The notes below the pieces were generated by a model. The model ran no database searches and was not told where the DNA came from. It worked only from the letters and a program-made list of their open reading frames with translations. From contig BFEA01000008.1 of NCBI GenBank assembly GCA_003427395.1, positions 5,201,209-5,265,208 on the forward strand: a stretch of 64,000 bases of DNA, read 5' to 3'. Shown here in pieces: positions 9,853 through 64,000 of this stretch (within the stretch, counting starts at the first letter, position 1; every line of letters begins with the position of its first letter). The DNA comes from Chara braunii (taxonomy: Eukaryota > Plantae > Charophyceae). Made by a program: the position numbers and the translations under genes.

Positions 9853-10510
9853 TTCTACTTTTTGTTGCGGAGTTTGGTCGATGAAGTGTTCGTTTTGGAT
9901 TTGGATTGCGAGGACTCGAACTTGCGACGGTAATAGGGGCAACGTGCAACCTATTTTTTGGGGTTTAGTTGATGTAGTGTTCATTGGATTGTGACCAGAA
10001 CTTGTGACAGCAGTAGCTATGTGAATATTAGTTTTTTTATTATTTGTTGTTTTTGTTTTTTTCATTTTTTTCATTTTTTCGTTTTTCGAGTTCTCGGCTC
10101 GAAGATTGAGGCACTGCCAGGTATTTGAGCGTATGAAGTGGCTGGTTTCCTTTTGAGAGATGAGGGAGTTTTAAACTTGTGACGTAACCTTATGTGAACT
10201 TCTAGAATCGACTAGTTGATATTCAAGCCCTTCCGGCTAATACTTAGTAAGCTTCTAGAACGACCTAGTCGATAGCTAGACCCTTTAGGCTAGTATATAA
10301 CAGAAGTCACAGTAACTCTTCCTACCGACTACTAAGACCCGTGATGAGGCTAGGCATTGGCGACCAGCCGAAACCGGTCGGGTCGTACGCCATATTGTAC
10401 TTCATCTTTTATCTTAGGAAAACGTGTCGCGTTCAGGTTTTTAACTTGACTTCTGACTCTCTTCTTCTTCATCCTTCTTGCGTTCTCTCTTTTTCTTTCT
10501 TTTTTGTTTG
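9853..10510 (+). repeat. 3' pseudo-LTR of the Penelope-like element
   Basis: Direct repeat of 4691-5480. Confidence 0.85.
10336..10384 (+). ncRNA. Hammerhead ribozyme, mutated copy (GTGATGA core, stem II mismatch)
   Basis: Same motif as 5188-5236 with a C-to-G change at core position 3. Confidence 0.8.
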
Positions 10511-13950: not shown

Positions 13951-14184
13951 AACTCCAGTTATCCTAAGAAAAACTTCGGAGGGAACCAGCTACTAACGGT
14001 TTGACTAGTCTTTCACCCCTATATCCAGGTCCGGCGAATCGACCTGCATGTCGGTACTGCCACAAGCCTCCACCTGAGTTCCTCTAGCCTCGCCCTATTC
14101 AGGCATAGTTCATCATCTTATGGGTCCCCGCGGAGATGCTCACACTCAAACCTCTCACAGCAGATTGTGGTTGGCAGACAGTGC
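13951..14184 (-). pseudogene. Degenerate fragment of nuclear LSU (25S/28S) rRNA
   Basis: aaacttcggagggaaccagctacta, tagtctttcacccctata and tcaggcatagttcatcatctt are the reverse complement of a conserved LSU segment, with many substitutions. Confidence 0.88.
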
Positions 14185-14944
14185 TCTCACAACTGTGCAA
14201 CTTGGATCAAAGGCAGGGGCAAAACCCGACTCCACCTCAAAAAATAAAATAAAAATAATAATAAAATGAAAAAGGTAGTAGTGTTTCACTTGTGTCGTAA
14301 AACTCCCACCAGTGCAGCTCAAACTCAAGCCTAGGTTCCTACACCTGATAGGTCTACCAAATGAGCTAGGGCCATCGATTCCGAGGTCGGTCTCGGTACC
14401 GACACCAAGACCGAAATTGCTAGTGTGTCGCAGAGAACCGACCGAGGAAAAATAAAAATAAATCAATATTGTGGATACTGGGGGAACGGAGAGGGGGAGG
14501 GACCGCCTCGCACCTTGGTCCTGCCAATCGGGCCCATTATCGGGGCTGGTAGCAACATTAATGGGGATAGCTCCGTCGACCCTCAACCCCTCTATACTTT
14601 CATGTCGCTCCATCGCTCTTTGACATCGGTTACCAGTCTTGATCCCTGAACCTCCCAGTTGAAAATCCGACACTGTAACCCATAGTGCTAGGCCCAAAGT
14701 TGGCATTAGCACTAGCCATCATCCATATGAACAAGTATTACATCGCACGTAGGCCGTCCCAAGCTCCCCAAGGCCAGATCTTGGCTTACCGATTAGATCC
14801 GCGGGCGTTGAACGCCGACACACGTCGCACGAAAGAGCCAGGTGCCTCTCATAACCGCAGCACGCCTTATTCGTCACGCCAAACCGCTCCCATATCGTTT
14901 TAATGTCGAAAACTTAACTCTGATTAAACTGAACTTTGTTTGCC

Positions 14945-20163: not shown

Positions 20164-20256
20164 GTCCTTCGGGACATCCGTTAAAATTGGAACAATATAG
20201 AGAAGATTAGCACGGCCCCTGCGCGAGGACGGCCCGTATAAGTGGAAGCAGGCCCG
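20164..20256 (+). pseudogene. U6: U6 snRNA-derived sequence, near full length, diverged
   Basis: gtccttcgggacatccgttaaaattggaacaatatagagaagattagcacggcccctgcgcgagga matches plant U6. ACAGAGA is changed to ATAGAGA and there is no oligo-T terminator. Confidence 0.88.
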
Positions 20257-24870: not shown

Positions 24871-26688
24871 TAGAGGAGATAGACTATATTTTAACAGGTG
24901 GCGATCCAGGCGATCCGCCCTGAATAGGGGAGATTCTGCAGTTAGTCTACCTTTGGCTTAAGCATTGGCTTAGAGGTAGACTTAGGCTTAGCTTATAGGG
25001 AGATTTTGAGTGAGTATGTATTATGGAGTTGTATTTTTCATACACTAATGATCTTAGCTTGGGGGTTGGTCTGCCGTGTGTTACATGTCTTTTTTATCAT
25101 TTGATTCAAGTTCAGGGCTAGATCCAGCTTCATCCCTTGAGGATCACTTTCTGTTATCATTGATAACAGGTCGGTTGCCGATTTGTCGGTTGCCGATTTG
25201 TCGGTTTACGACTCAATTTCAACTCACCCTTCACACTCAACCTAAAAGGCTTCAGCCCTGGTGAATTTTATTGTTTCATTATGGTTTCACCCGGACTTTT
25301 ATTGAATGGTCATTTAACAAAGGTACTGAGTATTTAATTAAGGTTGGTTGGACAAGAGGTTTTGGGGCTAGCATGACTAAAGCAAGGGGTATGAGTGTCG
25401 AAGGTGGTTGGGGTTGACTCCGTGGAGTGTGTGGGCTGTTGATTTGGTTCGTTGATGTGATTGCAGGTATGTGATGTGAATCAGATTCTGAATTTGGTTG
25501 CCTAAGATCACATATATACGTACTATTGTGAGAGACCCCAGTGAGACCGTGAGAAGTGATCATCACATACTTAACCCTTATATATGTATACATTGGTATA
25601 CTTGGGATGAATGTTTACATGGGTTAAAGAGCCCCCATACTAAAGTCCTACTCAGAAGCTGAGACTGAGGGGCTTAGGGGAGGCCTCTCCGTCTATTTTT
25701 ATTCTTGCTTTTTGATTATTTTTCTTAGTCGGATGTTTGGTCCTGGGCTGGGATTCGAGGTCCTTGTCAAGGACACCCCAAGCCCTAGGCTCTGCAGGGG
25801 AGGGGTTTTCCCTCGCGCAGAGCGTATTTGATTTGCCTACCGAGACACTCAGGTCGAGAGCCGGAGGTGTCGTGGCGGCTGCACAGCTATTCCTTCAGCC
25901 GTGCAATGTTGTGAAGGGTTAGGCCCTCACGACACTTCGAGTCTGACACTTGAGTGTCGTAAGCGGTACTCGGATCCACGAGGGACCGCTTGATTATGGG
26001 CACTCCATAGTACGCCATCATTGCGACTGTTTGCGTACGCCTGCATTGCAAGTCGATATGAGTAGGCTCTGCGTCCGTGCGGTTTTATACTAAGTCTCGC
26101 GCGCAACGCTTACCTGATTTCCTCGTCGGAAAGTTATGGGTCGGCTACCGAGGGGCTAGGAGCGTTGTCGCGTTGTTTGTGTTGTGCCGTTTCGTTTATG
26201 TGTTATTTTGTGTGTATGTGTGTTTGTAAAGTGGAGTGCACGTGGTGTGTGGGATGCGTCCTAGTCGACCGGCGACGAACCACGCTGGGGACCTCAGCTC
26301 CCCAAGATGTAGGTTCGTGTGCGGGTCCGATAGAGGCGTATTACCGCGCGTACCCCCTATGCTACAGCGAATGAGAAACGTCCTCGGCTGGTCCACCTCT
26401 GCGATTGCAACTGATTAGCTTTCGTACTATGGACTGGTAGCTCGGCGGGGATACGCCCACCGAAGGGAGGTGACAGCTCTTGTAAGGTGTAGGTAAGTCG
26501 TGCCTCGCGTAGGCCCTATCCTGTCATAGGGGCTCGCGAGAGGTATGGCTGGCACATTCGACCGGAGCGGCTTAAGGAAGCTCCACATGTATTATTTGCG
26601 ACGAAGGATTTAAACCGACTCCTGCGTGACGCGGCCGGGAGGGTCCTGCGCTGCCCTGGTGCGGTGCCGGACCGATGCGCTCAACAGG

Positions 26689-26706
26689 TGGCGCCGTTGC
26701 CGGGGA
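26689..26706 (+). promoter_or_regulatory. Primer binding site (tRNA-Asp type)
   Basis: TGGCGCCGTTGCCGGGGA lies two nt after an LTR end in CA. Confidence 0.88.
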
Positions 26707-27005
26707 TAACGGAAAGTCTGCCGTTGTCCCTGGTGGAACGACATCCGGGTATGAGAAGTAAATGATAAAAGGCACAAAGGAAGGACGAGAAAGTGACGAG
26801 AGATAATGAATGACTAAGTATAGGTGAGGAAATTTACCTACCAGAGTAAGGGAAGGTATGAAGAACGAACGTGTAGCATTGGATAAAAGTAAGTACTAAG
26901 GGTTAGGTAGGACGGATGGAATAGACCGGTCAAGGTGTAATGCTGAATAAAGGGATATGCTTGTTTTTCTCTTATCAGGGAGCTTGAAGAGAAAGGTCTG
27001 TCAAG

Positions 27006-27158
27006 ATGTCGCAGGGCGGCGGCGCATCGGGTGGTCCCAAGAAGGGCCTGACGCTCGATGACCTCATTGCGATCATTAACCGGCATGAAAGGAACCCGAG
27101 CAATATCCCTAAAGTCGATACCTTTCACTTTTGTGGGAAGAGGGTTTCAGAATGGTTG
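27006..27158 (+). pseudogene. Truncated gag-like N-terminus
   Basis: MSQGGG...LTLDDLIAIINRHERNPSNIPKVDTFHFCGKRVSEWL lies 300 bp after the PBS and is fused to the last 30 bp of the LTR. Confidence 0.6.
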
Positions 27159-28132
27159 GTGCGGTGCCGGACCGATGTGCTCGACAGCATACAGGTTCCC
27201 GTACAGATATTACCTATACGTTTCGTACGGAAAGGCCCCATACACTTACGTTCGGTAACGTAGGTCTGGTTTATAAAAAAAAAAAAAAAAAAAAACTCGC
27301 ATATATAAGAAAGATATCATTGTGTTTGAGATTTTTTTCTTTATTGTTTTTTGTTTGCCAAATAAGTTTTTATCACAGCCAAATGTATATGGTTACCCCT
27401 TATCCCACCTCACCTTACACTTTTCACCCCATTTTGATTATTGTCCTTGGCATGGGATTAGTAGTTTTGAACCCCTCTGAAAGGTAACATATAGCCAAAC
27501 CATGTGGTTTTACATGCCGGTTTCACTGCTTCTAACACTTCAAATCATGCAAAACTTTATGGTTTGGTTATATATTACCTTCTACAGAGTACCAAAACTA
27601 CCAAACCCACGTGAGGGACAAGAAGCAAGATGTGGTCAAAATCGCAAGCTGAGGTTGGGCGGAGGGGAAACCATATACAATTGGTCATGACAAAAACTTA
27701 TTCGACAGACATAATAATAAAAAAATAATATCACACATAATGATATATTTTTCACACATGCAAATTCTTTTATTTTTTTCTATGAAACAAACATTAACTG
27801 AGTGAGAATACATGAATTTTTGTGCACTCCCCTCCCCCCTCCTTCCACACGCGCTGATACCAGCCACTTGTATAGGTGGTTCAAACCACCACCCATACTA
27901 AACCTCGATTTTCAAGCCAATACTTTTTATCATGGGTTTATATAATACTTCAATGAATTCATGACCTTCTAGTACGAAGGTCATGGTCTTCTAAGATTAT
28001 TAAATGCAATAGTGGTTTGGAATAGTGTGTTGCACCAGTTGTTAATGTTTTACTATGATTGTAAACCCTTATGAGCATTATGTTCGTGCTTAAAACATGT
28101 ACACTTATATAAAGAGCCAAATGTGTTATTTC

Positions 28133-31598: not shown

Positions 31599-32568
31599 TG
31601 CAATCAGACTCGGTTTTTCTTCTTCTCTCACACATGCAAACAGATGGCAACTCACACTGGTGCCAAGCGCTCACTCAAAGCTCAGAGGTATGGAAACCGA
31701 GAACACAGTTCAGATGCAAACTCGCTTCAACAGGCTTATGGCGCATCAGCGCCTCTACATCCCAACTCTCGTCACTGTGTCCAACACCACTGTTCGCACA
31801 CACTCAACTCTGGATCACTTGGAATACCCCACACTCGTTCACTGTATCACACACGCGTACACACACTAACACCTAACGCTAGCTATGGCGGCTATGGCCG
31901 CCAACTACTACTAACTATGGCGCACTACTTCTTCAAGCCCACTTCGACCTCGGGCAACCGCAGGCCACCTCGCACAAGACGCTCGGGCAATGCTTCCGCA
32001 TGGCTTACGCGGGAATGAATGAATGGTTGGAAGCTGCCTCTTGATTTCTACTTTTGTAAGTCGTTGGTCTGCCCGTTTCCATCAGGCCCGTGGTGCACAC
32101 AATCCCTCATGGTACTTGTTGACTGTACAAAGTGAGACTGGGACTGGGTACCGCTGACTAAGTGAAATTGGACCCACCACTAGCCCACTGGCCTCTGGTC
32201 TGCTATGTCTAACGTGAGAAGACACTTGAAAGGCCACTTCTGGACCTTCCGAAAGTTTGTGGACTTGGCCTTTCAAGACTGTAGCAGCTACGACCTTGAC
32301 CTTTCAGGACTGTAGCAGCTACGAACTTAACCTTTCAGAACTACTACAACTATGACCCTTATGCAGTTATGACCCCTACTTCGAAATGTCTAAGGTTCAA
32401 AACTCGCCAACTACTCAGCCCTATGACAGACAACTTCCAACTACTAACACAAAGGTCATAGGTTCAAGGCACACAGGGTCGACTTGATACTGTACATAAG
32501 TAAGGTAAGGTGAGGTCTGGGGATCGAGCCCTGGGGTCTGCATCTGTGTCTAGGTGAAAACCGTTTCA
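31599..32568 (-). repeat. 3' LTR
   Basis: TG...CA termini and a direct repeat of 39587-40522. Preceded on the minus strand by the purine tract agagggag (32569-32576). Confidence 0.93.
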
Positions 32569-32687: not shown

Positions 32688-35600
32688 TCACGTAAACCAG
32701 TGGTCGTCCTCTGGTTCTTGAAAACCGAACCTCGCCTTATATTGTTTCTGTGGATGACCCCTACCTCCCGTTCTGAAGACATCTTCACCTACGATGGCGT
32801 CAATGTCGTACCTTTCGTCCATGTTCGGAGGGATCATGGACCTCCGTGATGGGAACTGTTGACTTGTCATACAAGGCAGCAACTTTGAAGCATGAAACAC
32901 CGGGTAGGTGTGAAGGTGCGCTGGAATTTCAACTGTGTAAAACGGTCCATCCTCTCCGCCTTTGACTTCGAATACCGGCCACGGTCCTCTATAGGCAGGC
33001 AATAACTTCTGCGAGATGTGCTCCTCAGGTGCAAACTCTTTAGACTTGACCCAAACTAAGTCGCCTACATGAAACTGTGATGGGCGACGGTGCTTGTTGG
33101 CTTGCTCTATCATTTGTTGGGCCTTGAGGTTCTATGTGATGGTAGCGGTCTCCTTTTCATAGTGTAGTGCAAATTCCCTAGTACTGAGGTTCTCTGTGAT
33201 GGTAGCAGTCTCCTTTGAATTTGATCCCGGTTCAATCCCGCAAACGGCCTACGCGGTCTAAAGGACTTATGTAACTCGTTGGGGGTGCGGCAAGTCGCTA
33301 AATGCACGCTATTATTGTATGCATTGGCTACCTTGGGAAGCATCGCTGATCGGGTCTAATATACATTCTAAGAACTTGTTGCAGAATTTTGTTCATATGT
33401 TCAGTCTAACCGTTGGTCTCAAGATGACGGTCAAACGGCATTAACAACCTAGAGCCATAGACTCTCATCAACTCCTGCCAGTTCTGACTAGTGAACCTGG
33501 TATCTCTGTCACTAACTATTGATAGCAGGAGACCATGCTCACTGACCAAATTATCACAGAACTTATCTATAACTAAGTGCGTATGTGCCTCTGCGAGCAA
33601 AGGAACATAAACTACGTATTTGCTGAATCGATCAACTATAATCATAATTTGCCTCTTGCCATGCCTACTCTTCACCCCAACATCCATGAAGTCAATGGAC
33701 ACAAAATCTCCGGGTCCTGTGGGAATAGGCAAGGGTCTGAGAAGACCAAGAGGGGCCCGCGTAGTGGTCTTATTCCGTTGGTAGACTTTGCAACTTCATA
33801 CATACTCTACGTAGTCGGCCTTCATACCTTGCCATGTATACGCGCGCATAAGGTTGGTTAATGTCTTTCGCCAACCAAAATGTCCCTCTATGTCGTGACA
33901 TTCCCCTAAGATCAGACTTCGGATCTCTTCACTATCGGGAATGCACAAACGGTCAGCTACGTTAGTCTTCTCAAATAATAACCCATTTATAGTGTGGTAA
34001 TCTAGCTCAGACTCTAGACACTCCCTAACTTTGTTGAGGAGATCACTATAAATAGGGTCCTGCGCATTTAACTTTCTGTTGGAGATCGCTCCCTATATCC
34101 ACATAGTGAACTATCGCTCCAAAGTAATCAGCTTTTCTACTTAAAGCGTCCGCAACTACATTTATACTTCCCTTTAACCGCTTTGAGCTCAAAGTCAAAT
34201 TGATCAATCTTTGTGGCCCACCTAACATCTTGGCCTATGTCTTCAGCCACCTCAATGTCTTGTGGTTTGAATACATTTTGAAGTGCCTCCCCAACAAATA
34301 ATGCTTCCAGTGATCTAAAGCTTGCCTGAGAGCGTAGAGTTCCCTCTCGTAGGTAGATGTTGGAACCTTCTCTAAAGGCATCCTAGCAGACATGAACTCT
34401 ACAGGTCTATAGCCATTGCCATCGTCTTGCTGTAGAACAACACCTATACCATACTGACTTTCGTAAGTGGTGACGACAAAAGGCAAGGATGGATTGGCTA
34501 CCTTGAGGGTTGAATTCTCTATCAAGGCCCACTTCAACTTTTTTAGGGTCGACGTACAATCTCTATCTCACTCCCAGATTGCTTTTTTCTTTAACAACTT
34601 GCAAAGGGGTGCAGCGATGGTAGAAAAGTTCCTCACGAACTTCCTGTAGTAATTTGTTAGACCTAGAAACGACCGCAACTCTTTCAACGTGCGGGGTGTT
34701 GGCCAATCTCTGATCGCTGCTATCTTGCTATCCTCAGGCTTTATGCCATCCCCATCTAAGACGTGGCCCAAATACAAACTTGCGTCTTGGCCCACTCGCA
34801 CCTCTTCGCACTAATCTTGAAGTTAGCTTCTCTTAGCTTCTCCAAGACCTGCCGCATATAACCCTCATGCTCCTGTAGGGTCTTACTAAAAACAAAAATA
34901 TCATCTAGGTATACTACCACGAATCTATCTAACCATGGCCTAAACAGATCATTCATACAACGCTGGAATGTAGTTGGTGCATTGGTTAGTCCAAAGGGCA
35001 TCACTATAAAGTTGTAATGCCCATATCGAGTCTAGAATGTTGTCTTATACTGATCATCAGAATGAGCCTCTATTTGATGATAGCCGGATTTCAAATATAT
35101 CTTTAAGAAATATTTGCAGCCCTACACCCGATTCAACAAATCATCTATACGGGGCAGCGGTTCTACATTCTTTATTGTGATAGCATTAAGACCCCTATAG
35201 TTGATATACATTCTAAGCTTTCCCTCCTTCTTGGGGACGAAAAAAACAGGTGCTCCGAATGGAGATGAACTGGACCTAATCCAACCCTTCTCGAGGAGCT
35301 CATCTAACTGTTCGCGCAGCTCCTCTAGGTCCCTTGGGGACATTCTGTAGATAGCTTCCTTAGGAGTCGTACTGCCAGACTCTATCTCAATACGATGATG
35401 GATAGGTTGCTGCAATACTTCTATAGGTGGCTTAGCTAACTTTGTATAATCCTCCAGCAGCTTGACGATAGTAGGACCTATAGGTTTCTCTTCCGTAGGC
35501 TTATTAACAGGCCTAAAATATGCTACAAAAACCTGTTTTTCTAACTGCTCCTTCACCAATCGCGCGAACGCAGGCGCACTAAGACAACAATGTGCCAGAG

Positions 35601-36144
35601 AGTTGTCTACTCCTGACACATGGAACAGACGAGCCGTCTTGACTTCGCCTGATGGACTAGGGAGCCTACACTCGTGCTCTCTCAAGTGGAGTGTGGTCGC
35701 TACTGCCTCTCCCCAGTCCATTCCTAAGACCGTGTCAAATAGGAGGTTGTCTTCTACGAGGAGAGTCATAGAATGAAAACTGTCCACCTTCCCATCCTTC
35801 ACTAGGCGATAGTACGCCTGGATTCCCTCTACGTAATCCTCGACTCACATCGTGCGATTGTCAGCTAGGATACTGACTATGCGATTTGCTAACTTATGGA
35901 CTTTCAAGTTCAGCTTCAGCTTCTGCAACGCTTTCACTAGGACTAGTTGTCCTTTCGCATTTTTCTTCATCTTGGCCCAGGCAAGCATTCTCTCCTTCAA
36001 CTCTTCTGCCACGTCTGTGAAGGTAGTGTCTAGAGAAACTCTAACACAAGCAGTCTCCGGACATCTAAACACCGACCAGCAACCTCTGCCATAGACACAT
36101 GTGGTTTTGAAGTTTTTCTCTGGTGCGCGCACTCTTCTCCACAT
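32688..36144 (-). pseudogene. pol remnants: protease C-terminal half, RT, RNase H, integrase, chromodomain
   Basis: FDTVLGMDW; [15 protein letters not shown]; MPFGLTNAPTTFQR and YLDD; ERELYAL; VSIDF and IVSDRDTRF; YRGPW; C-terminal YDIDAIV...QYKARF...DHW. Many stops and frameshifts. Confidence 0.93.
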
Positions 36145-36172
36145 GGTCTAGTGACAGGGGCAGTTGCAACCC

Positions 36173-38030
36173 CTACCGACGGTTGTCTTTTTCTGCCTGT
36201 GCAGCGAACCGGGCTTCTCTATATTTAGGACAGTAGTACTTTATGATATGGCCCGGATCACCGCAATAGACGCATTGATCCTCGTCTATTCGCCTTTGCC
36301 ACACAGTTTGTTCCAAGCCCAGATCTTCCCAAGGCCTGCCTTGTGGCAAACCAGGGTGCCATCCAAGTCTCCTAGAAGGTGACCGGTTAAAACGAGAGTC
36401 GTTTTGCAGGGAACCTTGACCCCTACCTCCCGCTTGGCGGCCTCCTCTACCTACCAACCCCCTGATCACTCTGTCCTCGACCACCGGAAGCCTGGCCCCT
36501 TTGGCCCCGACCTCCTCCTCTACCTTGCAGCCTCCCTCCAGTCGCAAGAACAACGTAAGTCCTCCTCTTACTATCGCCACTGTCATCCTCCTTCAGACCC
36601 CACTCTATATGGTTGTAAGGGACCTATTCCATACCACAATCATCTAATATAAGGATCAGGTGATCCTTGCCCTTAACCTAACCTGAGATGGTACAACCCT
36701 TTCACTTCTTACCCTTATCGAGGTCCTTATGCTAGAAAGTGAAAACTGGCATGGACCGTGCTTCAAACGTTACCACTTCCCTACTCAGAGAATCGTGGGT
36801 CATGGTAAACTTATAGCTCTTCTCAAAGAAGTGCCCTCGCAACGGCTCGGGCATAGCACAGAAAAACAGATTGACCAATCGAGTCTCAGTGAGCCCATGG
36901 TCGGAAACGGCCATCAATTCATCCATAACGCCCTTGAATGCTCTAGCACTCCTCCATTCGCGATAGTGGATAGTTTGCACTTTGTCAGAAGCTCTAACAC
37001 TACGTGTGATATCTGCAAACCTCTCACGCAATAACTTAAAAAAGTCACTGAGGGGGGTAATATGGGAATAGCCAACCATATCGTTATCGCACTTAGCAGC
37101 GCGGCAGAGAGATCTGGGGAAGCTAGCTGCTTCGTCTTTGAGGGCGTGGAAGGCGATGAGGACTTGTTCCTCAGGGGCTATCTTCTGAAGATGTACATAG
37201 GAGTTTACATTTGCCTCCCAATTATCAAAGTTTTCCTCCTTCCTGCTGTAGGAATCAAGGAATTTCACCTTCACATGCTCTCTACGAGGATGAACTTCGT
37301 CCTCCCTCGGAGCAGCAAGTTTCACGCCTTCTATGGCGCCTATGCAGAATTGTTCCATGTTCTCTAATCTCGCTTTCACCTCTGAGCCCACATGCATCAT
37401 CATTTCGTGTGCGAACTCTCTAAGCCCCAATCGTATGGAGCGCAGCGTCACATCCTGGCTTCTGGCGAACTGATACGGTTCGTCCCAAGCTTTGGCCAGG
37501 AGTTCGATATTCCTGGACATCACCTCCATCTTCCCCTATATATCCGCTTGCACCTCCATTTGCGCCCTTTCCTCCCTTATAGCCTCCAACACTCACGCCA
37601 TCTTGCTGGCCTCTTCCATTCGTTTTTTATTTTCCCTGGTCAGACAACTTCCATTCCAACTTCTTTTCCTCTTCTATGACGTTTGAGCGGATCTTCTTAT
37701 TTTCCAATCATGGGTCCTCCTCCTTCTTCGTGCCACTGGATTCCCCTTTGTCCCTGAAACTCTTTCTGAACAAGGGAACTTCCTCTTCTGCCTTTTTCTC
37801 TTCTTCTTCTTCTTCTTCTTCTTCCTTCACTGCTTTCAACTTTTCTTCCTCCTCCTTCAACCTTTCCAGCTCTTTCTACAACTTTTTTTTCTTCGCGGCT
37901 TGCTCCTCCAACAAGGCTAACTTTTTTGCCTGCTTCAGTACTTCTCTCTTCTCTTTCCCGGCCTTCTGCTCGGCCAGGATTCTAGCGGCCTCTTCCTCCT
38001 CCTCCTTCGTATAGGGAGTGGTACTAACAT
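36173..38030 (-). pseudogene. gag remnants with coiled coil, capsid-like region and zinc knuckle
   Basis: ORF 36732-37529, the motif CVYCGDPGHIIKYYC in 36173-36586, and an upstream E/K-rich segment. Confidence 0.85.
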
Positions 38031-39586: not shown

Positions 39587-40522
39587 TGCAATCAGACTCG
39601 CTTTTTCTTCTTCTCACACACATGCAAACAGATGGCAACTCACACTGGTGCCAAGCGCCCACTCAAAGCTCAGAGGTATGGAAACCGAGAACACAGTTCA
39701 AATGCAAACTCACTTCAACAGGCTATGGCGCATCAGCGACCGTACATCCCAATTGTCATCACTGTGTCCAACACAACTGTTCGCACACACTCAACTCTGG
39801 ATGACCCTGAATACCCCACACGCGTTCACTGTATCACACACACGTACACACACTAACACCTATCGCTAGCTATGGCGGCTATGGCCGCCGACTACTACTA
39901 ACTATGGCGCACTACTTCTTCAAGCCCACTTCGACCACGAGCATCTGCAGACCACCTCGCACAAGACGCTCAGGCAGCGTTTGGGCTTACGCAGGAATGA
40001 ATGAATGGCTGGACGCTGCCTCTTGATTTATACTTCTGTAAGTCGCAGGTCTGCCCTTTTCCACCGGGCCCATGGTGCACACAATCCCTCATGGTACTTG
40101 CTGACTGTACAAAGTGAGACTGGGACTGGGTACCGCTGACTAAGCGAAGTTGAACCCACCACTTGCCCACTGGCCTCTTGTCTGCTATGTATAATGTGAG
40201 AAGAAACTTGAAAGGCCACTTCTGGACCTTCCGGAAGTTTGCGGACTTGGCCTTTCAGGACTGTAGCAGCTACGACCTTGACCTTTCAGAACAACAGCAA
40301 CTATGACCCCTATGCAGTTATGACCCCTACTTCGACAGGTCTAAGGTTCAAGACTCGACAACTACTCAGCCCTACGACAGACAACTTTCAACTACTAACA
40401 CACAGGTCACAGGTTCAGGGCACACAGAGTCGACTTGATACAGTAGACAGGTAAGGTAAGGTGAGGTCTGGGGATCGAGCCCTGAGATCCGCATCTGTCT
40501 GCAAACGGTGAAAACCGTTTTA
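39587..40522 (-). repeat. 5' LTR
   Basis: Direct repeat of 31599-32568. Confidence 0.93.
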
Positions 40523-46521: not shown

Positions 46522-47079
46522 TACTTATTTTGGCCGCATGCCTTGACTACCTTTTTAATTGCAGAAGCTCCTTGAGGGATAGCTCCTCTCCTCCTCGGCG
46601 GAGATAGAAACATTAATGAAAAAAAAAAAAAAAACGAAAAAAAAAAAACATTAATGAAAAAAAAACATTAATGAAGAAAAAAAAAAAAGGGGCTCGGGGG
46701 AGAAAGAAAGACTCTCATCGCGTGACCCGATCCTTCTTCGGCAACTACGTTCCCCAGCGCTTCGCGCCTAACCGAGAGAACTTTTTTTTTAACTTTTTTA
46801 TTATTATTATTATTTTATTTTTTTTTGCTTCGCTCCTAACTGAGGGACTTGATTCTGTGCCCCTTCCGCCATTGCAAGGCATGAATGAGCTGCGAATTGT
46901 CGAATTGCAGAATTGCCCCTAATCGTCGAATTGCAGAATTGCCCCTGCCGCAGTCTTTCAATTTCTTCTACTAAAACGCACATTATTATTATCAATTAAA
47001 CTTTAAAAAAAAGGGTACAATATCCATTCTGCACCATTTCGTTTTCGAAGATGTGCTAGCAGACGACAAATAATCGAAG

Positions 47080-47220
47080 TTTTTTTTTTTTTTTTTTTTT
47101 TTTTATGATCCCTGCGCAGGGGCCATGCTAATAATCTTCGCTGTATCATTCCAAAAATTTTAAGGGATGTCCCGCAAGGACATATATATATATTTTTTTT
47201 ATTTTTTTTTTTTTTGGAAG
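47080..47220 (-). pseudogene. U6: Retroposed 3'-truncated U6 snRNA copy with poly(A) tail
   Basis: The minus strand reads gtccttgcgggacatcc...gatacagcgaagattattagcatggcccctgcgcagggat, then a poly(A) run. Candidate 15-bp TSD at 47065-47079 and 47221-47235 (13 of 15 identical). Confidence 0.88.
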
Positions 47221-50168: not shown

Positions 50169-51191
50169 TCACGTGGCGGTGGCTTTCCCAGCAAGTGACT
50201 CCTTGAGCGCCTCTGCTTCCAAGTACGCTGAAGAGTAAGGCAGGAACTCCGACGCGTGCTCTCCTGCCACTGTATTCATTGCCACGGATAACGTCGGGAT
50301 CGCGGCGATCTCGTCGGTCGTCAGATCTCTCACGTATCGGGCAGGGTTTCCCCCCCACAACTTTTTCCCGCCAATCAAACGACCGGGCGGAACGACAGAC
50401 CCCGCTTCGAGGATCGCATTCTTCTCGACGACCGCTCCTTCCATCACCACGCAGCGGTCGCCGACGACCACCTGGTCCTCGATTGTGCAAGCGCGCAAGG
50501 TACACCCCGCTCCTACTGACACGTATCGCCCGATGACGGTATCAGACGCAACAGAGGAAGATACCCCCGCCGACTTCGGCGCGCTGTGAATCACACTCTT
50601 CTCCTGAATGCTGGAGTAGAACCCCACCTTGACTTTGCTGAGGTCGCCCCTCAACACACAACCATACCAAATCGTGGCCCGATCTTCGATTTCCACGTCA
50701 CCAATCAGCGTCGCATTGGGTGCCACGTAAGCATCAACAGCTACATCCGGTTCTTTGTCGTTTAGCACAACGATCTGGCGATGTCGATTATACAACTCCT
50801 GCGCGGCTCGATTACTGGTCCAGCCAGCGATTTGACGGCGGCCTTGCGTCAGAGAGGAGGAAGAGTGCCACGTTGCAGGTGGATGAGCCCTGACCACGCG
50901 GCGACACGCGGCTGTCATTCCTGGCACGTGGGAGGTGGAGAACGTGCGAGGGGAGGAGGAGCAAGAAGAAGCCGCCGTCGCCAAGGGAGGAGAAGCAGAA
51001 GCATCGCCGGCGGATCCGCTCTGAAGCTGCAATTGGCCGAACGCGCGCGCATGGCACGACACGTGGCTCTCTCTCGTCGCGGCGGCTGAAATGCCGCCTG
51101 CGGGAAGCGGACCCCCGCTGCCCCTTTCTAACACCACAGAGATGGAACGGATGACCGTCCGCGTACACCTTCTTCCCGCCATGGCCGCCAT
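50169..51191 (-). CDS. GAMMACAL: Mitochondrial gamma carbonic anhydrase-like protein (complex I CA domain subunit), single exon, 340 aa
   Basis: Hexapeptide beta-helix (DAYVAPNATLIGDV, IWYGCVLRGD, WGGNPARYVRDL) and C-terminal EFLPYSSAYLEAE. Lacks two zinc-ligand His (VGAGCTLRAC), as in gamma-CAL. R/S/A-rich presequence, first ATG at 51191. Confidence 0.93.
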   Translation of the reverse strand: MAAMAGRRCTRTVIRSISVVLERGSGGPLPAGGISAAATRESHVSCHARAFGQLQLQSGSAGDASASPPLATAASSCSSSPRTFSTSHVPGMTAACRRVVRAHPPATWHSSSSLTQGRRQIAGWTSNRAAQELYNRHRQIVVLNDKEPDVAVDAYVAPNATLIGDVEIEDRATIWYGCVLRGDLSKVKVGFYSSIQEKSVIHSAPKSAGVSSSVASDTVIGRYVSVGAGCTLRACTIEDQVVVGDRCVVMEGAVVEKNAILEAGSVVPPGRLIGGKKLWGGNPARYVRDLTTDEIAAIPTLSVAMNTVAGEHASEFLPYSSAYLEAEALKESLAGKATAT

Positions 51192-55838: not shown

Positions 55839-56300
55839 TGTCGAGCGCATCGGCCTCCGTGTGAGCGAGGGCCCTCCCGGCTATGTCACGCTGAAGTTAA
55901 AATGAACAAAATCAGAGACAACTTAGGACGATGCACAATTAGTCCCATTAACCGCCGAGACGGACGCGTTTGCATTGCCCCTTCGTCGCTGTAGCCGGGT
56001 GCGCCAGCTGTACATCCCGGGGTCCCCTACGACAGGATAGGTTCTCGCAGGGCACGTCTTCCCTTCCCTAAGGGGCTGTCACCACCCTTAGGGGCGTATC
56101 CCTACCGAGGTACCGACCCACGTGCGAAAAGTTTTATATGCAGTCGCAGAGGTAGATCAGCCGAGGGCGTTTGCTCGTTCGCAGTAGTATAGATACACTT
56201 GGTTAACGCCAAGTGGACCTGAACGTCGCTCGTTCCTAGGGCACTGACCTCCCAGGTGTCGAACAAACGTCGGTCGACTAGGACGGTCTCAACCAAGCGT
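55839..56300 (-). mobile_element. LTR 3' segment homologous to 26260-26686, with TATA box
   Basis: The reverse complement aligns by eye with 26362-26686, ends in ccgatgcgctcgaca, and has TATAAAA at 56132-56138. Confidence 0.75.
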
Positions 56301-57749
56301 GAAACCCAACATTCATCCTAGTCCCTTTTACACACAATCAAAAAAAAGTTACAATATCCAGATAATTATATCAAAAGAAATCGACCGCAGCCGACACAAA
56401 TACATATATATTCAACCCAAAGTAACATCTAGGAGAATCCAAATCTTAATTTGATACGTCTAATAACACAAGACCAAAAATAATCCAACCTCTTCAGGTC
56501 GAATACCATAAACAATCAACATACAATCGCCAACGAGAAGTTGCATTAATGCAGCCGACAAGGTAGTCGGACTGCCTTAGTTTTGACTTGATGAGACACA
56601 CTGCCAAATTTTTTTTTCCAACTAGAGTCGACCTATGATTGAGCATGCATACGCCTGTCTTCATACATTCTCGATCTTCCTGGATGACATGTTGCTTCGC
56701 GGATGATTCTTGATCAGAGGCATTGCTTGACGTGCTGCATGCCTCTTCCTCTAGGAAGTGGTTACTGGATATTCCTTCCCCTCGCTTGAGCCCGAAGACC
56801 CAGATCTCAGAGGTTGGGCCGTCACCACCGAGTCGGCAAAGTACCACCCCCGACGAGTCGGGTCCACTCCAAGTCGATAGCAGGGCCGGCTCCGAAAGCA
56901 TACGGACCCCCGCCTTGGATGCTTCCTAGAGAAAAGGGAACGCGTTCACCCCAAGTAATTCTCAATTATTCTTATCCCTTCTCGGTTCATGGTAATTTAG
57001 GCGTAAAGAAATTAAATGAGGTAGAGAATGAGAATCACTTGGACAGGCATAGGTATAGAAGGTCATTCCGGTTAAATGCGTAAATCATGGGAAAATGCTA
57101 AGTCCAATTGACTGCATTTCCATTTTATTCGCAAGTTTTCTTTCATGGCACCTGTTGAAATTACTCATTTCATAATTCAGGTACTTTTGTCATGCAGGCA
57201 AGTGAAAGATAGAAACATGACAATCCCTTTCTCCATCCCAAATAGGCAATGTCAATCTCCATAGCAACATCCTCCTACCTACCTACACAACATGCAAAGA
57301 AAACAAGTTCAAAAGAAGATAGTACAATCCCATGCTCAAGTCAGACCTTTTCATTCACATGCATAATTCACACAACTTTCCTCTGCCTTTTCTTTTAAAC
57401 ATTCAAAACAACAAGGTCGAGCAAAGTGTGGTTTCACACAGGTGTGAAGGAAAATCCGAGTCATTCAACTGACCTTGAGTGAAGTTGAAATAGTACACTC
57501 AAGAAGACCGTATGAATTTTTTGCTCTCCTGACGAGAAGGTTGACGTACCCAGTCGTCTCCAAAGTGATCGACACCACTCTCCTGTGATGACCGCCTGCC
57601 GGAACACCCTCTCAGCACCCAATCGCTTTTCAATGCTCAGGCGGCGTTACCCTGTTACCACCACTTCAAAATGAAGACACAGTTTTAACACACCTCCACT
57701 GTGTCCACGCCCCACTTCCACTTAGTGCACAACTATTGTCGCTACTAGC

Positions 57750-57965
57750 GCCGTCACTGCAAAAAAAACGGCAGCGCTTTCGCCGCACCGTCAAGAAACT
57801 AATGCTGCAGTCGTAAGAATTCGGCAGCGCTTCCGCACCGCCACCAAGAAACCAAGTGCCGCCGCTGCAAAATTTCGGCAGCGCTTCCGCACCACCACCA
57901 AGAAAGCAAGCGCCGCTGCCAAGAAACCAAGTGCTGCCGCTGCAAAATTTTGGCAGCACTTCCTT
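57750..57965 (-). repeat. Tandem repeat of about 54 bp containing GGAAGCGCTGCCGAAATTT
   Basis: Four copies of cggcagcgcttcc-like sequence on the + strand. Confidence 0.8.
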
Positions 57966-59088
57966 CCCAAAAACACAGCGGCGCGACCCCCTATACAAAA
58001 AATCGTTGTCGTGAGCCGACCGTCGGGCAACACCTTCCCGTCGAAGCCCTTTGCCGCACGGTTCAGTCCCGCTGCCGCCTCACGGCTACCGCTTCCCCAT
58101 AGCCTGCAGCATAGCACAAAGGTGGGGCAAGGAGCTCCCAACCTCCAGCTATGGCTGCCTCCTCCTTCCTCCAAGTGCCCCTGCAGACGTCCAACACTTC
58201 GCCTCATCACACCAGTAGCCAACCAGCCAGCATCTACTCAAGTAGAATGCCCCAACAGCATTGCCACAAGTGTGAGGCTGCTGGGTGGCAGGCTAGCTTT
58301 TATAGCTGGCTGAAGGCTGAGGGCAGCTGCTTTGCCCCCAGCCAATCTCGGAATAGGGCCTGGCCCTTGATCGACCCTTGATCTAGACCTCGATCAAGGG
58401 CCAGAAAACTGGATGTTCCCCTAGGGGAACCAAGTTCTGAGCCCTGGCAATGCATCTGGCCCTCACCCGCGGCCAGACGCAGCCCAGAAATGGCTGAGTA
58501 CAGCCATTTCTCAGCAGACTGTTGAAACCAACAGTCTGCTGTCAATTCACAGTCCATATGCTTCTAAACTCGCATCTGGACTGAGGCTGCGGCTAGATCC
58601 GCGGCCATTTTTGTTTCCAAACTTCTTCTTCTTCTTCTCTGCCCTGTATCTACGCTAAGGGCCTGACCACATACGTGGCCGTTACTTTTCTCCACACAGG
58701 CCCTTCTACCAAGCCCAAAAGGGCTTCTTTTCCCTTGCAGTACCACGCGCCCGCACCCGACCACAACCAGTGCTAGGTTCGGGCTCTGTAGAGTGTTGCA
58801 GCCCGTTCTCGAAATCGGACAGGCACAGCCGCGACAACCTCAGAAACCAAAAAAAAAAATATAGAATCAAAGTTAAAGAAAAAAGGAACCAAAAGAAAAG
58901 AATGAAACAGACACTTACCTGTTCGTGGTCCCATTGCAGCCACCAGGTAAGTCGCTCCCCTTGTCGCCGTCGGCAGGTAAGGTCTTTTCTCCCTCTCTCT
59001 CTCTCCCACACACCACGACAACCCGAATGTAGCCGCCTTGGGCGGCAGATCCATTCGCCCATCCACAGATGGGCTATCGGGGCTCATC

Positions 59089-59127
59089 CCCCTGATGAGT
59101 CGGTAAAAGTCCGACGAAACAGTCGGG
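59089..59127 (+). ncRNA. Minimal type I hammerhead ribozyme, second family, intact core
   Basis: CCC-CTGATGA-GTCGG-taaaagt-CCGAC-GAAAC-A-GTC-GGG. Confidence 0.82.
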
Positions 59128-59393
59128 CTCAGTCATGCCCCTTTTCCTTTCGCCCGTTCGTCCGAAACGAACGGGCATATAGTTCTAAGTAATAGAGGAA
59201 AAAAAAAAAAAAAAGAATCTAAACAAAATATAAGAAAAGAAAAAAAATCTAACAAAATCTAAAAAAAAGGAAAAGAAAAAACTTGCCTAAATCGTGGCTG
59301 CCCGTTTTAAATGGGCGCCTATCGTTTCACTGGGGACTTTAAGTCCCCAGTCAGTTCAGGACGCGCCAGCTGGCGCGTCGTTTTTTCATTTCT

Positions 59394-59428
<35 letters not shown>

Positions 59429-60833
59429 CGTTGGCGTCAAGCCAACGTTCACCGTCACGTGGCTTTTCAGCCACGTCCTGTTGAGATACAGACCCAAGTT
59501 CGAATCTCGTAAGATTCGACGAAATTGCCCACTTTTTTTTTTTTTTTTTCCCCAAAAAAAAAACAGAAAAAAACTCGGGCCATTTCTCGATTTATGCGAG
59601 TCATCCTTGCCTTGGGGCCATGCCAATCTCGGCGCGACTGCTTTCAGCCGCGCGATCTTACAGATCGCACGACCGAAAATGGTCGCGCCAAAGGCTGGGC
59701 TGCTCCAAAAGGAGCTGGCCCAGTGGTACAGTTAGTCAAGTTTGATCCCCATGTCTGGGAGGTGATAATGTGATACTGGTACCTACTAGGCTAGCTCCTT
59801 CTCATAATATAAAAAGAGCAACCCTTCCATATGAAGGGCTTTTGGTGCCCAGCAGGCCCCTTTCCACCGCCTAGTAGGTTGTGCCTGCTAGCCAGCTTGC
59901 TGCCGTGGCCGACAGGCGGGGTTGGCAGCCGACAGCTTAATGGTTGCCCTACCTAGCCGGCCCCGACGCCTTCGCTCCTGGTCCTCGGCGCAAAAGCCCT
60001 GTGGACCCTGAACTATTCCTCAACGCCACGGTTCTTCCTTACCGCTGCGACCCTTTCTTAGCCCACTTAGGCTCTGAATCGCGCGGCTTAACAGTCGCGC
60101 GACACTATTTTACGTAGAATAGGTCTAATTCTACCGTTCCCATGTCCGCACATACCTGCGGCTTTGACAAAACGAAGCATTACCATTCACATCCGTTACT
60201 TCTAGACGCCATGCGCGTTCCGACTATCGTCCGAAACTCTTAGTCTGTCAGTCATAGGTCAGGTCTGAATAAACATTGGCAACATCAGTCTCATCAAGTC
60301 TCTCAATTCAGCGAGAAGGTCGGACAGCATCCGACGTTGAAAAAACAGGGCAAATACCCTTGTCAGGGCATTTGCCCCGACAACATTCCCGGACCCCATT
60401 GAACGACGTCCCCGTCGTTTACCATCAATATAGAAGTCAGGGTTCTTACAAAATGATTACAATACATAACAATTTTACAATCTGCTTAAACTAAGTTGAA
60501 GCCTAATTCCACTGACAACCACTCAAAAAAAAATTATTTCTTAGAATGGTATCGGAAGCCCTCCGACTAGTTTCAAGCTACATCCATTCAGTTGATACTA
60601 TCATTTATCCAAAAAAAAATAGGATTAACCCCCTGATAGGTCTTTCGAGTCATTATGAACCCCCTGACGGGTCTATCGAATGTATCAACCTCCTGGAGTC
60701 GTTCAGACAAAGTCTGAATAATCAAATATGTATACGTATATATATACATACGTATTACTCAATATCACACATTAACTAAGTAATAATTCGTAATAATTCA
60801 TGTCGCAACCCTTTTCTTTCATGTAAGTTCTTG

Positions 60834-61525
60834 AAGAGTGCACTGATGAAGACAGGTCTCCCTGTCGCATACTCTTACAAGGAACAAAGGAGAACATTGG
60901 TCAAGACAAATTTCACTGTCGCAAACGAACTCCTTTACTTTAGAAGAGAACACTGATCAAGACGGTTATCCCGCCGCAAATGAACTCTTCTCTCTCTCAA
61001 AAGAAAATGTCGATCAAGACAGGTTTCCCTGCCGCAGACAAATTCCTCTCTACCTGAAGCCGAGAACAAAACGCTGATCGAGACAAGTTTCCCTGCCGCA
61101 ACGAATTGCTCTCAATTAATTTTTGAAAGGAGATCTGATCAATACAGATTGCTCTGCCACAGATATACCCCTCAAAGATTGGAGGAGAACTTTGATCAAG
61201 ACAGGTTTTCCTGCCGCAGACGAACTCCTCTATTGTTCATTTAATGATTAAAATGAAGGAGAACGCAGTTTATGACAGGTTATCCTGCCACAAACGAGTT
61301 CCCCTATTAATCTGNNNNNNNNNNNNNNNNNNNNNNNNNNNNNNNNNNNNNNNNNNNNNNNNNNNNNNNNNNNNNNNNNNNNNNNNNNNNNNNNNNNNNN
61401 NNNNNNNNNNNNNNNNNNNNNNNNNNNNNNNNNNNNNNNNNNNNNNNNNNNNNNNNNNNNNNNNATGAAGGAGAACGCAGTTTATGACAGGTTATCCTGC
61501 CACAAACGAGTTCCCCTATTAATCT
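60834..61525 (-). repeat. Array of 8 hairpin units, period about 55-75 bp, mostly with GNRA-type loops
   Basis: Minus-strand core GGCAGG-GAAA-CCTGTC-TTGATCAG. The copy after the N gap duplicates unit 8. Confidence 0.88.
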
Positions 61526-61968
61526 GAGCTGCAACATAAAATTATTACATTGAACTTACTATAGTTTATATCATGTCAGAATCAGTCAGATGTTATCGAT
61601 CTCCCTGTGATATGCGTCGAGGAGTGGTGTAATCCTCTTTAAGGGATAACATCTCGACATCAAGCCCAACTTTAGATTCGATCCTCACCACATTCCCTCC
61701 GATTCCGATGTTGCGACCCCATCCATCGGCTACCTAATAGAGTAGGACAACCCCACCTCCCACAACCGAGGTTAGTGGGACCTCGGCTATGAAGGTGAGA
61801 TGACTCTGGTCGACACGCAGTTAGGTCACTACTCCTTCCCTTGTGGCGAACAGTAGTCGCCTCTTCTATAAGCAGCCTCTTGATGTGATCACATCACCTT
61901 CCTCCCTTTCAATGATAGTGTAGTCCTCGTTCCTTAAACCACATAGGATCCAAAAGACAACATCCCGC

Positions 61969-62300
61969 TGTCGCGCGCGACTGTCCCACACCCTAGACGC
62001 AAAGTAGTTTTTGGTGTTGGACCTCACGGTCGTGTCACGCAGGAGTCTCTTTTGTCACCTTAACGAAAATACCACTCCGACCGTGCGCGTGTGCTATACC
62101 TCTCGCAACTCCCTACGACAGGTTAGGGATCCCGCAAGGTACAACATACCTCCACCTGCGGGAGTTGTCACCATCTCTTAGGTGGGTGTATCCCTACTGA
62201 GCTACTGACCCACATACGACGGCTTTTATATGCAATCGCAGAGGTAGGCCAGCCGAGGGCGTTTTCTCGATCGTCGTAGCATAGGCATATGCGCGGTAGA
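61969..62300 (-). mobile_element. Third homologous LTR 3' segment, with TATA box
   Basis: Aligns by eye with 26362-26650, ends in gtcgcgcgcgaca on the minus strand, and has TATAAAA at 62224-62230. Confidence 0.72.
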
Positions 62301-63600
62301 ACGCCTTAAGACTGACCCGTTATGTCGAGACCGGAGTGGTAACTCCCCGGACCGACTATCTAACCAGGTCGACTTCTCGGACAGTCTTCCACGCTTAGCT
62401 AACTTAAGACAATGACTCTAAGTTTCCTTTGTTGAACTTATGAAAATGTCATAGTCAAGCCCTTAGTAATCTCTCATTCTTCTCAAAAGAAGCCCCAAAC
62501 AAATGACTTTCTAGGCACCGACTGACCTACTATCTCATTCACAAGTATATATATATATATGTATGTATGTAAATCAGGGGAGCTGACTGAGCAGTGGATC
62601 TCACTTTCACGATTGTCGTGCCCCTTTGCCTGAATTTCCAGAAGATCCCAAACTCAGGAGACAGTACAAATGTTCAACACCTGCGCATATACAGGAAAAA
62701 CACATACACACATACAAATGCAGACACAGAATGCGCTACGAGCGTCAACCTTTAACCCATTCATGACAAGCCACTCACGCCCCAAACCCTTGAAAACAAC
62801 ATTCCTTCATAACCCTGACTCCATTTTACCCCAGCCCCACACATTTTGAAGACTCCTGGGTGTGATTTGGACAATGTAGGCATAGATACAGGGGGAAGAT
62901 TTATCTGTTCCTTTCTTAGGTCTTGTCTTAGGTGTGGGTGCCAAACCATGGGTGGAAGTTGAGTCGGAGTTCTACCGACCTGTTATCCAGGGATAACAGA
63001 ATTGTTGTTCTTACGGATTCCCCCGTAAGTCCTCCGAAGTGTCGAAACCTGTAGACACAATACAGTCCAAGAGAATCTTAACATCCCTCTTCCTAACTGA
63101 GATCTAGAAAGTTCCTTCTTGACTCTGTGTCCTTTGTCTGACTCCTACTATTCTTAGCTAATTGTTTGGGCTGTTGCCCACTCCGCTTCAGGTAGTGAAT
63201 AATAATTCACTCCCGTTTTACTGTCACGATAATTCTCCATACTCCTTTTCACTATCTCATTCTTATCCCTTTTGAGACTATCCTATCTGAGGTCCCTTTC
63301 CTTCTCCCAACACACATGATCACATCATCAATCCAGCTTGTGGAAAGAATCTCATGGAAAGGAATCAGATGAATGGATAGTCTTTCTCTGAGGCAAGATC
63401 TCACTTCTCCCCTTTCAGTAGAATCAGAGATGGTTAGTTAGGACTCAACAATGCAGATTGTGGAGAAAGTTAGTGGTGGTATGGCAGACCATTCAGGATA
63501 TATCCATCTGTTACTGGAGCTTTGTTTGATAAAGGCAATCTTGTGGGTCTTGGCCACTGCGTGCCAAGCACATTTAGCGGTAGACTTATCCTATGGCTAG

Positions 63601-64000
63601 CCACTGATAAGGCAGGTGTCCTTGAAACCTCGCTACTTCTTATATCGGATTAGTCACTGATAAGACAGGATTCCCCTGCTACTCTTATCACTGACTAACC
63701 CTCAATAAGGCGGGTGCCCAAGGATCCTTGCTACTCTTATCACTGACTAAGTTCCAGGATGTTTATTGATAAGGCATGTGTCCTTGAAACCTCACAACTC
63801 TTATATCAGACTAGTCATTGATAAGACAGGATTCCCCTGCTACTCTTAACATTGGCTAGCCCTCAATAAGGCGGGTGTCCAAGGGTCCTTGCTTACTCTT
63901 ACCACTGAAAAGAATGTTAGGTTTAATCAGTGATAAGGCAGGTGTCCTTGAAACCTCACAACTCTTATATAAAACTGGTCACTGATAAGACAGGATTCCC
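63601..64000 (-). repeat. Higher-order hairpin array: three subunits per period of about 163 bp, running off the window
   Basis: gataagrcagg...cctgctactcttatc subunits, with periods starting at 63606, 63768 and 63932. Confidence 0.85.

Follow-up and report, generated by a model that had tools for sequence, protein, structure and literature searches.

The window analysed here, a 64,000-nt stretch of the Chara braunii genome (assembly GCA_003427395.1, contig BFEA01000008.1, positions 5,201,209 to 5,265,208), contains a tandem array of eight distinct hairpin units on its minus strand (60827..61311), delimited by sequence comparison, folds and a covariance model. The array is located in retrotransposon sequence outside the long terminal repeats (LTRs), between the end of one LTR at 61969 and the start of another at 60382. 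The segment that holds it (60383..61968, minus strand, 1586 nt), defined by the LTR boundaries and by protein comparison, is a non-coding internal segment and shows no similarity to the gag-pol proteins of related elements. Within this segment, the array is positioned 446-1142 nt after the upstream LTR end and 452-1141 nt before the downstream LTR start, in sense orientation for both LTRs. The downstream LTR (55839..60382, minus strand), which we read as a 3' LTR, starts with TGTCGGGG at 60382, ends with ...GCTCGACA at 55839 and includes a promoter-like conserved module at about 56192-55995 on the same strand, recognized by homology. The upstream LTR runs past the window end and is represented by its 3' part (61969..64000, minus strand), which ends with ...GCGCGACA at 61969. 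It carries the conserved module at about 62306-62072 (minus strand, by homology) and a TATA-like GCATATAAAAG at 62233-62223 (minus strand), 254 nt before the LTR end and in the same orientation.

Each repeat of ~60 nt consists of a unit of about 50 nt plus a short spacer, and the spacing of the units is irregular (54-74 nt). With units numbered from u1 at the lowest coordinate to u8, the minus-strand cores, read from the letters, lie at 60851-60866, 60905-60920, 60961-60975 and 61018-61033 (u1-u4) and at 61082-61097, 61143-61158, 61200-61215 and 61274-61289 (u5-u8). An assembly gap of 150 N (61315..61464) falls within the array, and beyond it repeat comparison and the covariance model identify a ninth unit (61462..61523, minus strand, core 61486-61501) that is identical to u8. 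Because the 62-nt blocks on the two sides of the gap (61253-61314 and 61465-61526) are identical, the ninth unit is probably an assembly duplicate and not a genuine extra unit. The same identical blocks suggest that the gap is probably an unmerged contig overlap. The array holds eight units, and possibly more given the gap.

Tandem Repeats Finder did not report the array because its units are less than 70% alike, which serves as a warning that standard tandem-repeat finders overlook arrays of such divergent units. The array was recovered by a repeat search and by covariance model R1, which was built from the eight units. In the 64-kb window, R1 identified nine units at E values of 1e-7 to 1e-18 and gave no other match at E<0.05.

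A shared three-tier hairpin

All eight units share one three-tier hairpin, and the folds of single units agree with the consensus fold. The outer stem, P1, comprises 6-10 bp; its 5' arm is rich in purines and its 3' arm in pyrimidines. The middle stem, P2, has 3-5 bp of unit-specific sequence (CGUUG/CAGCG, UGUC/GACA, AUCUG/CAGAU, CGUU/AAUG, CAU/GUG). An asymmetric internal loop has UGC or only C on its 5' side and UUGAU(CA) on its 3' side; in u8, the 3' side is altered to AUAAAC, and its pairing with the 5' side makes the helix continuous over 12 bp. The inner stem, P3, is GGCAGG/CCUGUC, in which the second pair is G.U in six units and A-U in two. P3 is conserved in sequence rather than covarying, with a double change in one pair only. 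Apical loops are 4-5 nt long, with six different sequences in the eight units (GAGA, (U)GAAA(U), GAUAA, GAAA, GAAA, GCAA, AAAA and AUAA). Change rates are about 8-16% in the unpaired UGC and UUGAUCA and in the inner stem (84-92% conserved), compared to about 22% in the apical loop, which is the least conserved part of the core. The flanks and spacers of the units are the most variable and differ in length as well.

An initial annotation, made from the letters of this DNA, had quoted eight cores, and all of these were found on the minus strand at 60851-61289. The outer stems that it had described as co-varying (aagag/ctctt, aaaggag/ctccttt, gaggag/ctcctc) are real, as is the compensated closing pair that it had mentioned, a change from G-C to A-U in the unit at 61143.

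Tandem hairpins of a single orientation within a transposon could in principle be precursors of small RNAs, that is, a cluster of hairpins resembling microRNA (miRNA) precursors or generating small interfering RNAs. The geometry of the units makes this extremely improbable. In seven of the eight units the longest uninterrupted helix is 6-10 bp and is broken off at a large asymmetric loop, a structure with little likeness to the substrates of Dicer-type enzymes, and we detected no miRNA family match beyond chance. A cluster of miRNA precursors was rejected on similar grounds, since a near-continuous stem of about 20 bp would be needed, while the helices here measure 6, 3-5 and 6-10 bp and u8 alone has one of 12 bp.

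Folding strength and strand preference

On the minus strand every single unit folds more stably than expected, with z scores of -2.2 to -7.3, and the minus-strand fold is better than the plus-strand fold in seven of the eight units. The entire 500-nt array has a folding energy of -172.5 kcal/mol on the minus strand (z -5.0), where it resolves into eight separate hairpins, and of -123.0 kcal/mol on the plus strand (z -1.8).

Strand asymmetry is also apparent within the helices, which contain 26 G.U pairs, able to pair on the minus strand only, versus 5 A.C mismatches, which correspond to pairing on the plus strand only (binomial p 2e-4). When the inherited G.U at position 2 of P3 is left out, 20 versus 5 remain. 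The surplus of G.U pairs over A.C mismatches therefore identifies the minus strand as the folded strand, as the initial annotation had proposed.

Pairing is maintained by compensating changes

We compared alignment A5 of the eight related units, with 16 pair columns, to 500 shuffles. Standard pairs occupy 84.9% of the pair cells in A5, compared to 80.7 +/- 1.5 in the shuffles (0/500 reach the observed value), and sliding the partners by 1-3 columns lowers the figure to 48-57%. Two-sided changes were observed in 8 of the 16 pairs, compared to 3.3 +/- 1.3 in the shuffles, again with 0/500 reaching this number.

In a flank swap, the 5' flank and core of each unit were joined to the 3' flank of every unit and then folded. 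Own combinations had a mean of -20.5 kcal/mol and foreign combinations one of -15.8 (permutation p ~5e-5). Flank complementarity is therefore unit-specific and does not merely reflect purine runs opposite pyrimidine runs. Each unit has accumulated 10-23 substitutions from the consensus, yet its fold is at least as stable as that of the consensus (-18.2 kcal/mol). When the changes of each unit were re-placed at random within the same regions of the consensus (n=400), the summed minimum free energy was -104.3 +/- 9.0 kcal/mol (best -135.9), compared to -162.5 kcal/mol observed. Own versus swapped flanks, two-sided changes, randomized substitutions and the surplus of G.U pairs all support selection on pairing and, in line with the initial annotation, the conclusion that the pairing of the repeated hairpin has been maintained by compensating changes.

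These tests bear directly on the possibility that the array is a neutral by-product of replication, in which template switching or slippage of reverse transcriptase at a hairpin-forming unit has left copies of a functionless founder hairpin whose structure was merely inherited. Template switching or slippage has been proposed for the repeats in the 3' untranslated region of Ogre elements, drift of the apical loop fits neutrality, and arrays at this place are present in some related elements and absent from others, with one of them unstructured. Neutral inheritance does not, however, predict unit-specific flank complementarity, the full folding energy retained after 10-23 substitutions per unit, or the finding that unpaired bases of the internal loop are far more conserved than the spacers. 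We regard it as unlikely.

The apical loop drifts

The initial annotation had placed its emphasis on GNRA tetraloops, and its count of five GNRA loops among the eight is correct. All apical loops can be reached from GAAA in one or two steps. Of the five that are unlike GAAA, two retain GNRA, and random single substitutions of GAAA retain it in 4 of 12 cases. The loop variants are as expected from neutral drift away from GAAA, and selection on GNRA as such is not supported. The annotation had named free drift of the loops from GNRA together with an absence of covariation as evidence that would speak against a selected structure; we observed the drift, but covariation holds. If a specificity determinant exists, it is the internal loop together with the inner stem.

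Related Chara elements

The gag start at 27006 (plus strand) was used as a lead to related elements, and the N-termini of 64 representative relatives were aligned. The relatives that were fetched are gag-pol genes from the same assembly, GCA_003427395.1, with matches to RVT_1, RT_RNaseH, Integrase_H2C2 and rve that identify them as Ty3/gypsy-type. This gag-based search yielded no full-length close relative of either flanking LTR. The LTRs of L002, L006 and L008 are about 7.3-7.5 kb long, begin with TGTCGG... and end with ...GCTCGACA. A superfamily LTR module of about 250-350 nt with a TATA-like box ends about 115 nt before the LTR end, and between the LTR start and this module the LTRs of the relatives are unrelated from family to family. 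The module is present three times in the window, at about 26322-26570 (plus strand), 56192-55995 and 62306-62072 (both minus strand). It is strongly structured, its TATA-like box is followed by a tRNA-like stretch (GGTAGCTCGGTAGGGATAC), and it is the only internal LTR part common to all families seen (72-79% identity among the window LTRs and L002-L008). Because the relatives carry the LTR module and gag-pol on one strand, the minus strand is the sense strand at the array.

A primer-binding site, TGGCGCCGTTGCCGGGGAT, is located 2-3 nt past the 5' LTR in five relatives (L002 at about 9733, L003, L004, L005 and L006). We take this sequence to be complementary to the 3' end of plant tRNA-Asp; it also occurs in the window at 26689-26707 (plus strand). 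A search for a primer-binding site matching the initiator tRNA gave chance-level matches only. A conserved hairpin, AAGCGAC-GGGGA-CGTCGCTT, is situated about 20 nt before every 3' LTR (L002 at about 21323-21342), where a polypurine tract would be expected, and is duplicated in tandem with a 33-nt period in L003 and L004.

At the place equivalent to that of the array, L003 and L004 carry a tandem array of 47-49-nt units, and in L007 there are three small repeats, with a hairpin of 7 bp. In L002, L006 and L008, no repeats were detectable at this place by the repeat search and Tandem Repeats Finder; the blanks of the latter are weak, as it fails on the array itself, and the repeat search was used for this reason too. 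An exact-pattern scan of metagenome contigs for the units was blank.

Two further sets of small repeats were observed. Between the array and the hairpin preceding the downstream LTR, at 60624-60679 (minus strand), there are two 31-nt tandem hairpin-like copies (GACCCGUCAGGGGGUUC / GACCUAUCAGGGGGUUA), which bear a loose resemblance to the CCCC...GGGGG units in the arrays of L003 and L004. L007 contains, at 21965-22366, an LTR-borne array whose 31-nt units are grouped in a higher-order period of 119 nt and each carry a small GUGGC...GCCAC hairpin. The promoter module of the LTR that is closest to the upstream LTR of the window follows this array at a distance of about 3 kb.

Ownership of the segment and position of the array

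The two flanking LTRs share the module only, at about 75% identity, and therefore are not the pair of one element, so that the locus is nested or chimeric. The LTR of L007 (minus strand) is the closest found to the upstream LTR, and its homology ends exactly at 61969. Judging from the arrangement of the sequence, we favour the interpretation that the segment would be the 3'-terminal non-coding region of the element to which the downstream 3' LTR belongs. This is favoured because a pre-LTR hairpin (AAACGAC-GGGGA-CGTCGTT, 60402..60420, minus strand, from alignment with relatives) and the LTR start follow the segment in the normal arrangement. The hairpin precedes the 3' LTR in the aligned L002, L003, L004 and L006, and the same junction was matched in L007 and L008. 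It is favoured also because the LTR end at 61969 is not followed by the primer-binding site TGGCGCCGTTGCC, which five relatives carry 2-3 nt past theirs, and because the relatives have about 2-3 kb of non-coding sequence from the gene model to the 3' LTR and mostly a leader of a few hundred nucleotides. Under either ownership, the array is internal, non-coding and on the retrotransposon sense strand.

A related higher-order array with a 161-nt period and three sub-units (63601..64000, minus strand), found by the repeat search, is contained in the upstream LTR, 1.3-1.7 kb before the TATA box of that LTR. Its type-A sub-unit has the core GCAGG-loop-CCUGUC-UUAUCA in common with the units of the array described here, although R1 did not recover it. 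The common core suggests kinship with the element of the upstream LTR, contrary to the favoured ownership.

The units might act as duplex DNA instead, as imperfect palindromes (GGCAGG N4 CCTGTC plus TGATCA) bound by a dimeric DNA-binding protein in an enhancer, an insulator or a tether. Such a role would fit the presence of the related array in the upstream part of an LTR, where it reads GATAAG on the plus strand. Conservation of the inner stem in sequence, with its single doubly changed pair, would suit such sites, and TGATCA is itself palindromic. An excess of G.U over A.C would be meaningless for a duplex, however, as would flanks that covary without conservation of sequence; the array is outside the U3 region of the LTR, and its units are irregularly spaced (54-74 bp). 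Duplex-DNA sites are accordingly very unlikely in our judgement.

Position near a 3' LTR is also relevant to a role in the single-stranded plus-strand DNA formed during reverse transcription, identical in sequence to the RNA, where the hairpins could provide pause, priming or strand-transfer signals. Strand asymmetry and compensation suit any single-stranded nucleic acid of minus-strand polarity, and the array, which is next to an unusual hairpin in the expected place of a polypurine tract, is 450-1140 nt upstream of where the LTR starts. G.T pairs, on the other hand, stabilize DNA little, yet there are 26 such cells here, and we know of no retroelement mechanism that requires eight repeated hairpins for priming. 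A function of the structure in DNA of this kind is thus improbable, to about the same degree as duplex-DNA sites.

Comparison with known systems

The array most resembles the tandem repeats located between pol and the 3' LTR of plant Ty3/gypsy elements and would then be a structured variant of a known, unexplained feature. Members of the Tat lineage (Ogre, Retand) carry hypervariable, family-specific tandem repeats in this region, whose origin and function are stated to be unknown (PMC11963269, PMC7004042). Like these, the array consists of short, family-specific tandem units located in the non-coding interior near a 3' LTR. In contrast to them, its units form hairpins, show compensating changes and favour one strand, and its host is a charophyte alga. 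The Tat, Ogre and Retand repeats have been treated as DNA repeats and satellite seeds, with no mention of hairpins or secondary structure in PMC11963269 and PMC7004042, and a full-text literature search for a link between repeats at this position and RNA structure returned nothing relevant. With respect to the definition of such repeats, an LTR start with its preceding hairpin is present 452 nt downstream of the array, but on the upstream side there is no pol and instead the end of another LTR at 61969.

The initial annotation had considered the motif unassignable to a known family. With regard to Rfam this is accurate: in Rfam 15, searched at gathering thresholds and then at E up to 10, the array had no match; two miRNA matches at chance level fell in AT-rich simple sequence elsewhere. 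As a general statement it was too strong, as the position of the array fits the described tandem-repeat region of Ty3/gypsy elements.

Among retroviral RNAs, the constitutive transport element (CTE) is a structured element that is read through conserved bases of internal loops, and 4-8 gamma-CTE copies in tandem increase Gag production (PMC4174252). The array is similar to the CTE of Mason-Pfizer monkey virus (MPMV) and to the gamma-CTE in that these are located in or near the 3' part of the genomic RNA, present conserved bases of an internal loop on helices that vary and become more effective in repeated copies. It differs in having no sequence or Rfam similarity to a CTE. The NXF1-binding loop motif of the CTE, AAGACA (PMC4174252), is found in u1, u2, u4 and u7 (60849-61203), where it is restricted to the plus strand, runs antisense to the LTRs and falls half within a stem. 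The three type-A sub-units of the higher-order array in the upstream LTR (63662-63992) all carry it as well, again confined to the plus strand. An identity as an NXF1-binding CTE was rejected, as AAGACA is on the antisense strand and overlaps the stem, and we treat its occurrence as a coincidence. To our knowledge, green plants have been reported to lack a clear NXF1 orthologue.

The retroviral Psi element comprises several nucleocapsid-bound stem-loops on the genomic RNA that provide multivalent, family-specific recognition by Gag. By analogy, the array may present multiple small hairpins on a putative genomic RNA; Psi, unlike the array, is situated in the 5' leader and is not composed of tandem copies of one unit.

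Two other RNA motifs were considered. A hammerhead ribozyme, suggested by CTGATGA/CTGATCA together with GAAA and by a Penelope-like element with a hammerhead-like core in another part of the window, was rejected because the units lack a three-way junction, a helix I and a GAAA-helix III arrangement. The only CTGATGA is in u1 (plus strand), the other units have CTGATCA, which alters the catalytic G8, and GAAA is the variable apical loop. A kink-turn or box C/D motif was rejected by inspection, as the 5' strand of the internal loop has no A for tandem G.A pairs.

A possible docking platform for an RNA-binding protein

Our leading interpretation, which we hold tentatively and with somewhat less than even confidence, is that the array functions in cis as a structured RNA element of an LTR retrotransposon and provides multivalent docking for one RNA-binding protein. 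We infer that the minus strand is transcribed and acts as RNA. The repeated units on the sense transcript would form a multivalent docking platform, and the protein would read the UGC / UUGAU(CA) internal loop together with the GGCAGG/CCUGUC stem. The outer stems would need only to pair, and the apical loop would be free to drift. A candidate partner is the element's own Gag/nucleocapsid, which would point to selective packaging; alternatively, a host factor could act in the export or stability of unspliced RNA.

Several observations weigh against this interpretation. The P1 purine runs opposite pyrimidine runs pair readily on either strand, and a transcription-linked mutation bias could contribute to the excess of G.U pairs. 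The tests draw on just eight related sequences, and both the flank-swap and the substitution test assume a star-like descent of the units from the consensus. A single copy of the array was studied, probably a dead one, and R1 detected no homologue of the array in seven related Chara elements. The L003 array at the equivalent place is not significantly structured (z -0.4 and -1.4), and on these values we rejected a rule by which arrays at this position are always structured. Finally, ownership of the segment is ambiguous, with flanking LTRs from different families.

Family-specific repeats of the region between pol and the 3' LTR act as seeds of satellite DNA, but their origin and function are left open in reviews. 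If the units are RNA hairpins kept by compensatory evolution, a protein partner of the internal loop and a control of packaging, export or stability become testable, and Chara braunii would offer a natural system for studying such arrays. A broader and, in our estimate, unlikely extension of the docking interpretation is that the family-specific tandem repeats of Ty3/gypsy elements across the plant lineage are selected RNA hairpin address tags, multivalent sites co-evolving with Gag or another RNA-binding protein, and not junk from sloppy reverse transcription. If so, address tags would decide the packaging or export of RNA, and non-autonomous elements could parasitize autonomous ones.

Other features of the window

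The element of the LTR at about 26 kb, from which the gag lead was taken, is internally deleted. At 27006-27186 (plus strand), fifty gag codons join the last 30 nt of an LTR (...GGTGCGGTGCCGGACCGATGTGCTCGACA, ending at 27186). The LTR-end motif GGTGCGGTGCCGGACCGATGTGCTCGACA is also present at 18159-18173 (plus strand) and inverted at 18081-18095 (minus strand), beside a hairpin of the pre-LTR type and an LTR start. The region 18081-18173 looks like a remnant of about 100 nt in which an LTR start is joined to an LTR end.

Another LTR pair may be represented by direct repeats of about 970 nt (31599-32566 and 39587-40520, plus strand) that show 88% identity and are separated by 8 kb; the internal open reading frames (ORFs) between them (35122-37529, minus strand) had no Pfam match. 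Two copies of U6 small nuclear RNA are present at 20164-20262 (plus strand) and 47075-47183 (minus strand), with Rfam scores of 63.9 and 56.1 bits, one of them inside the giant LTR at about 26 kb. A fragment of large-subunit ribosomal RNA is found at 13986-14318 (minus strand, 90 bits). The U6 copies and the ribosomal fragment were probably captured or retroposed.

At 4692-10513 (plus strand), we observed a probable Penelope-like retroelement with terminal repeats in direct orientation (4692-5254 and 9853-10402, 88%). A tandem duplication of 114 nt, at 5150-5368, carries in each copy a hammerhead-like core, CUGAUGAG-GCUGG...CCAGC-CGAAAC-CGGUC (5193, 5307), for which the Rfam hammerhead models gave no match even at E = 1. 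A run of ORFs at 6010-8988 includes one weak GIY-YIG match (7147-7767, E 0.002). A paper on Penelope-like elements of the green lineage mentions Chara braunii (PMC8557442). A gamma carbonic anhydrase gene is located at 50172-51191 on the minus strand.

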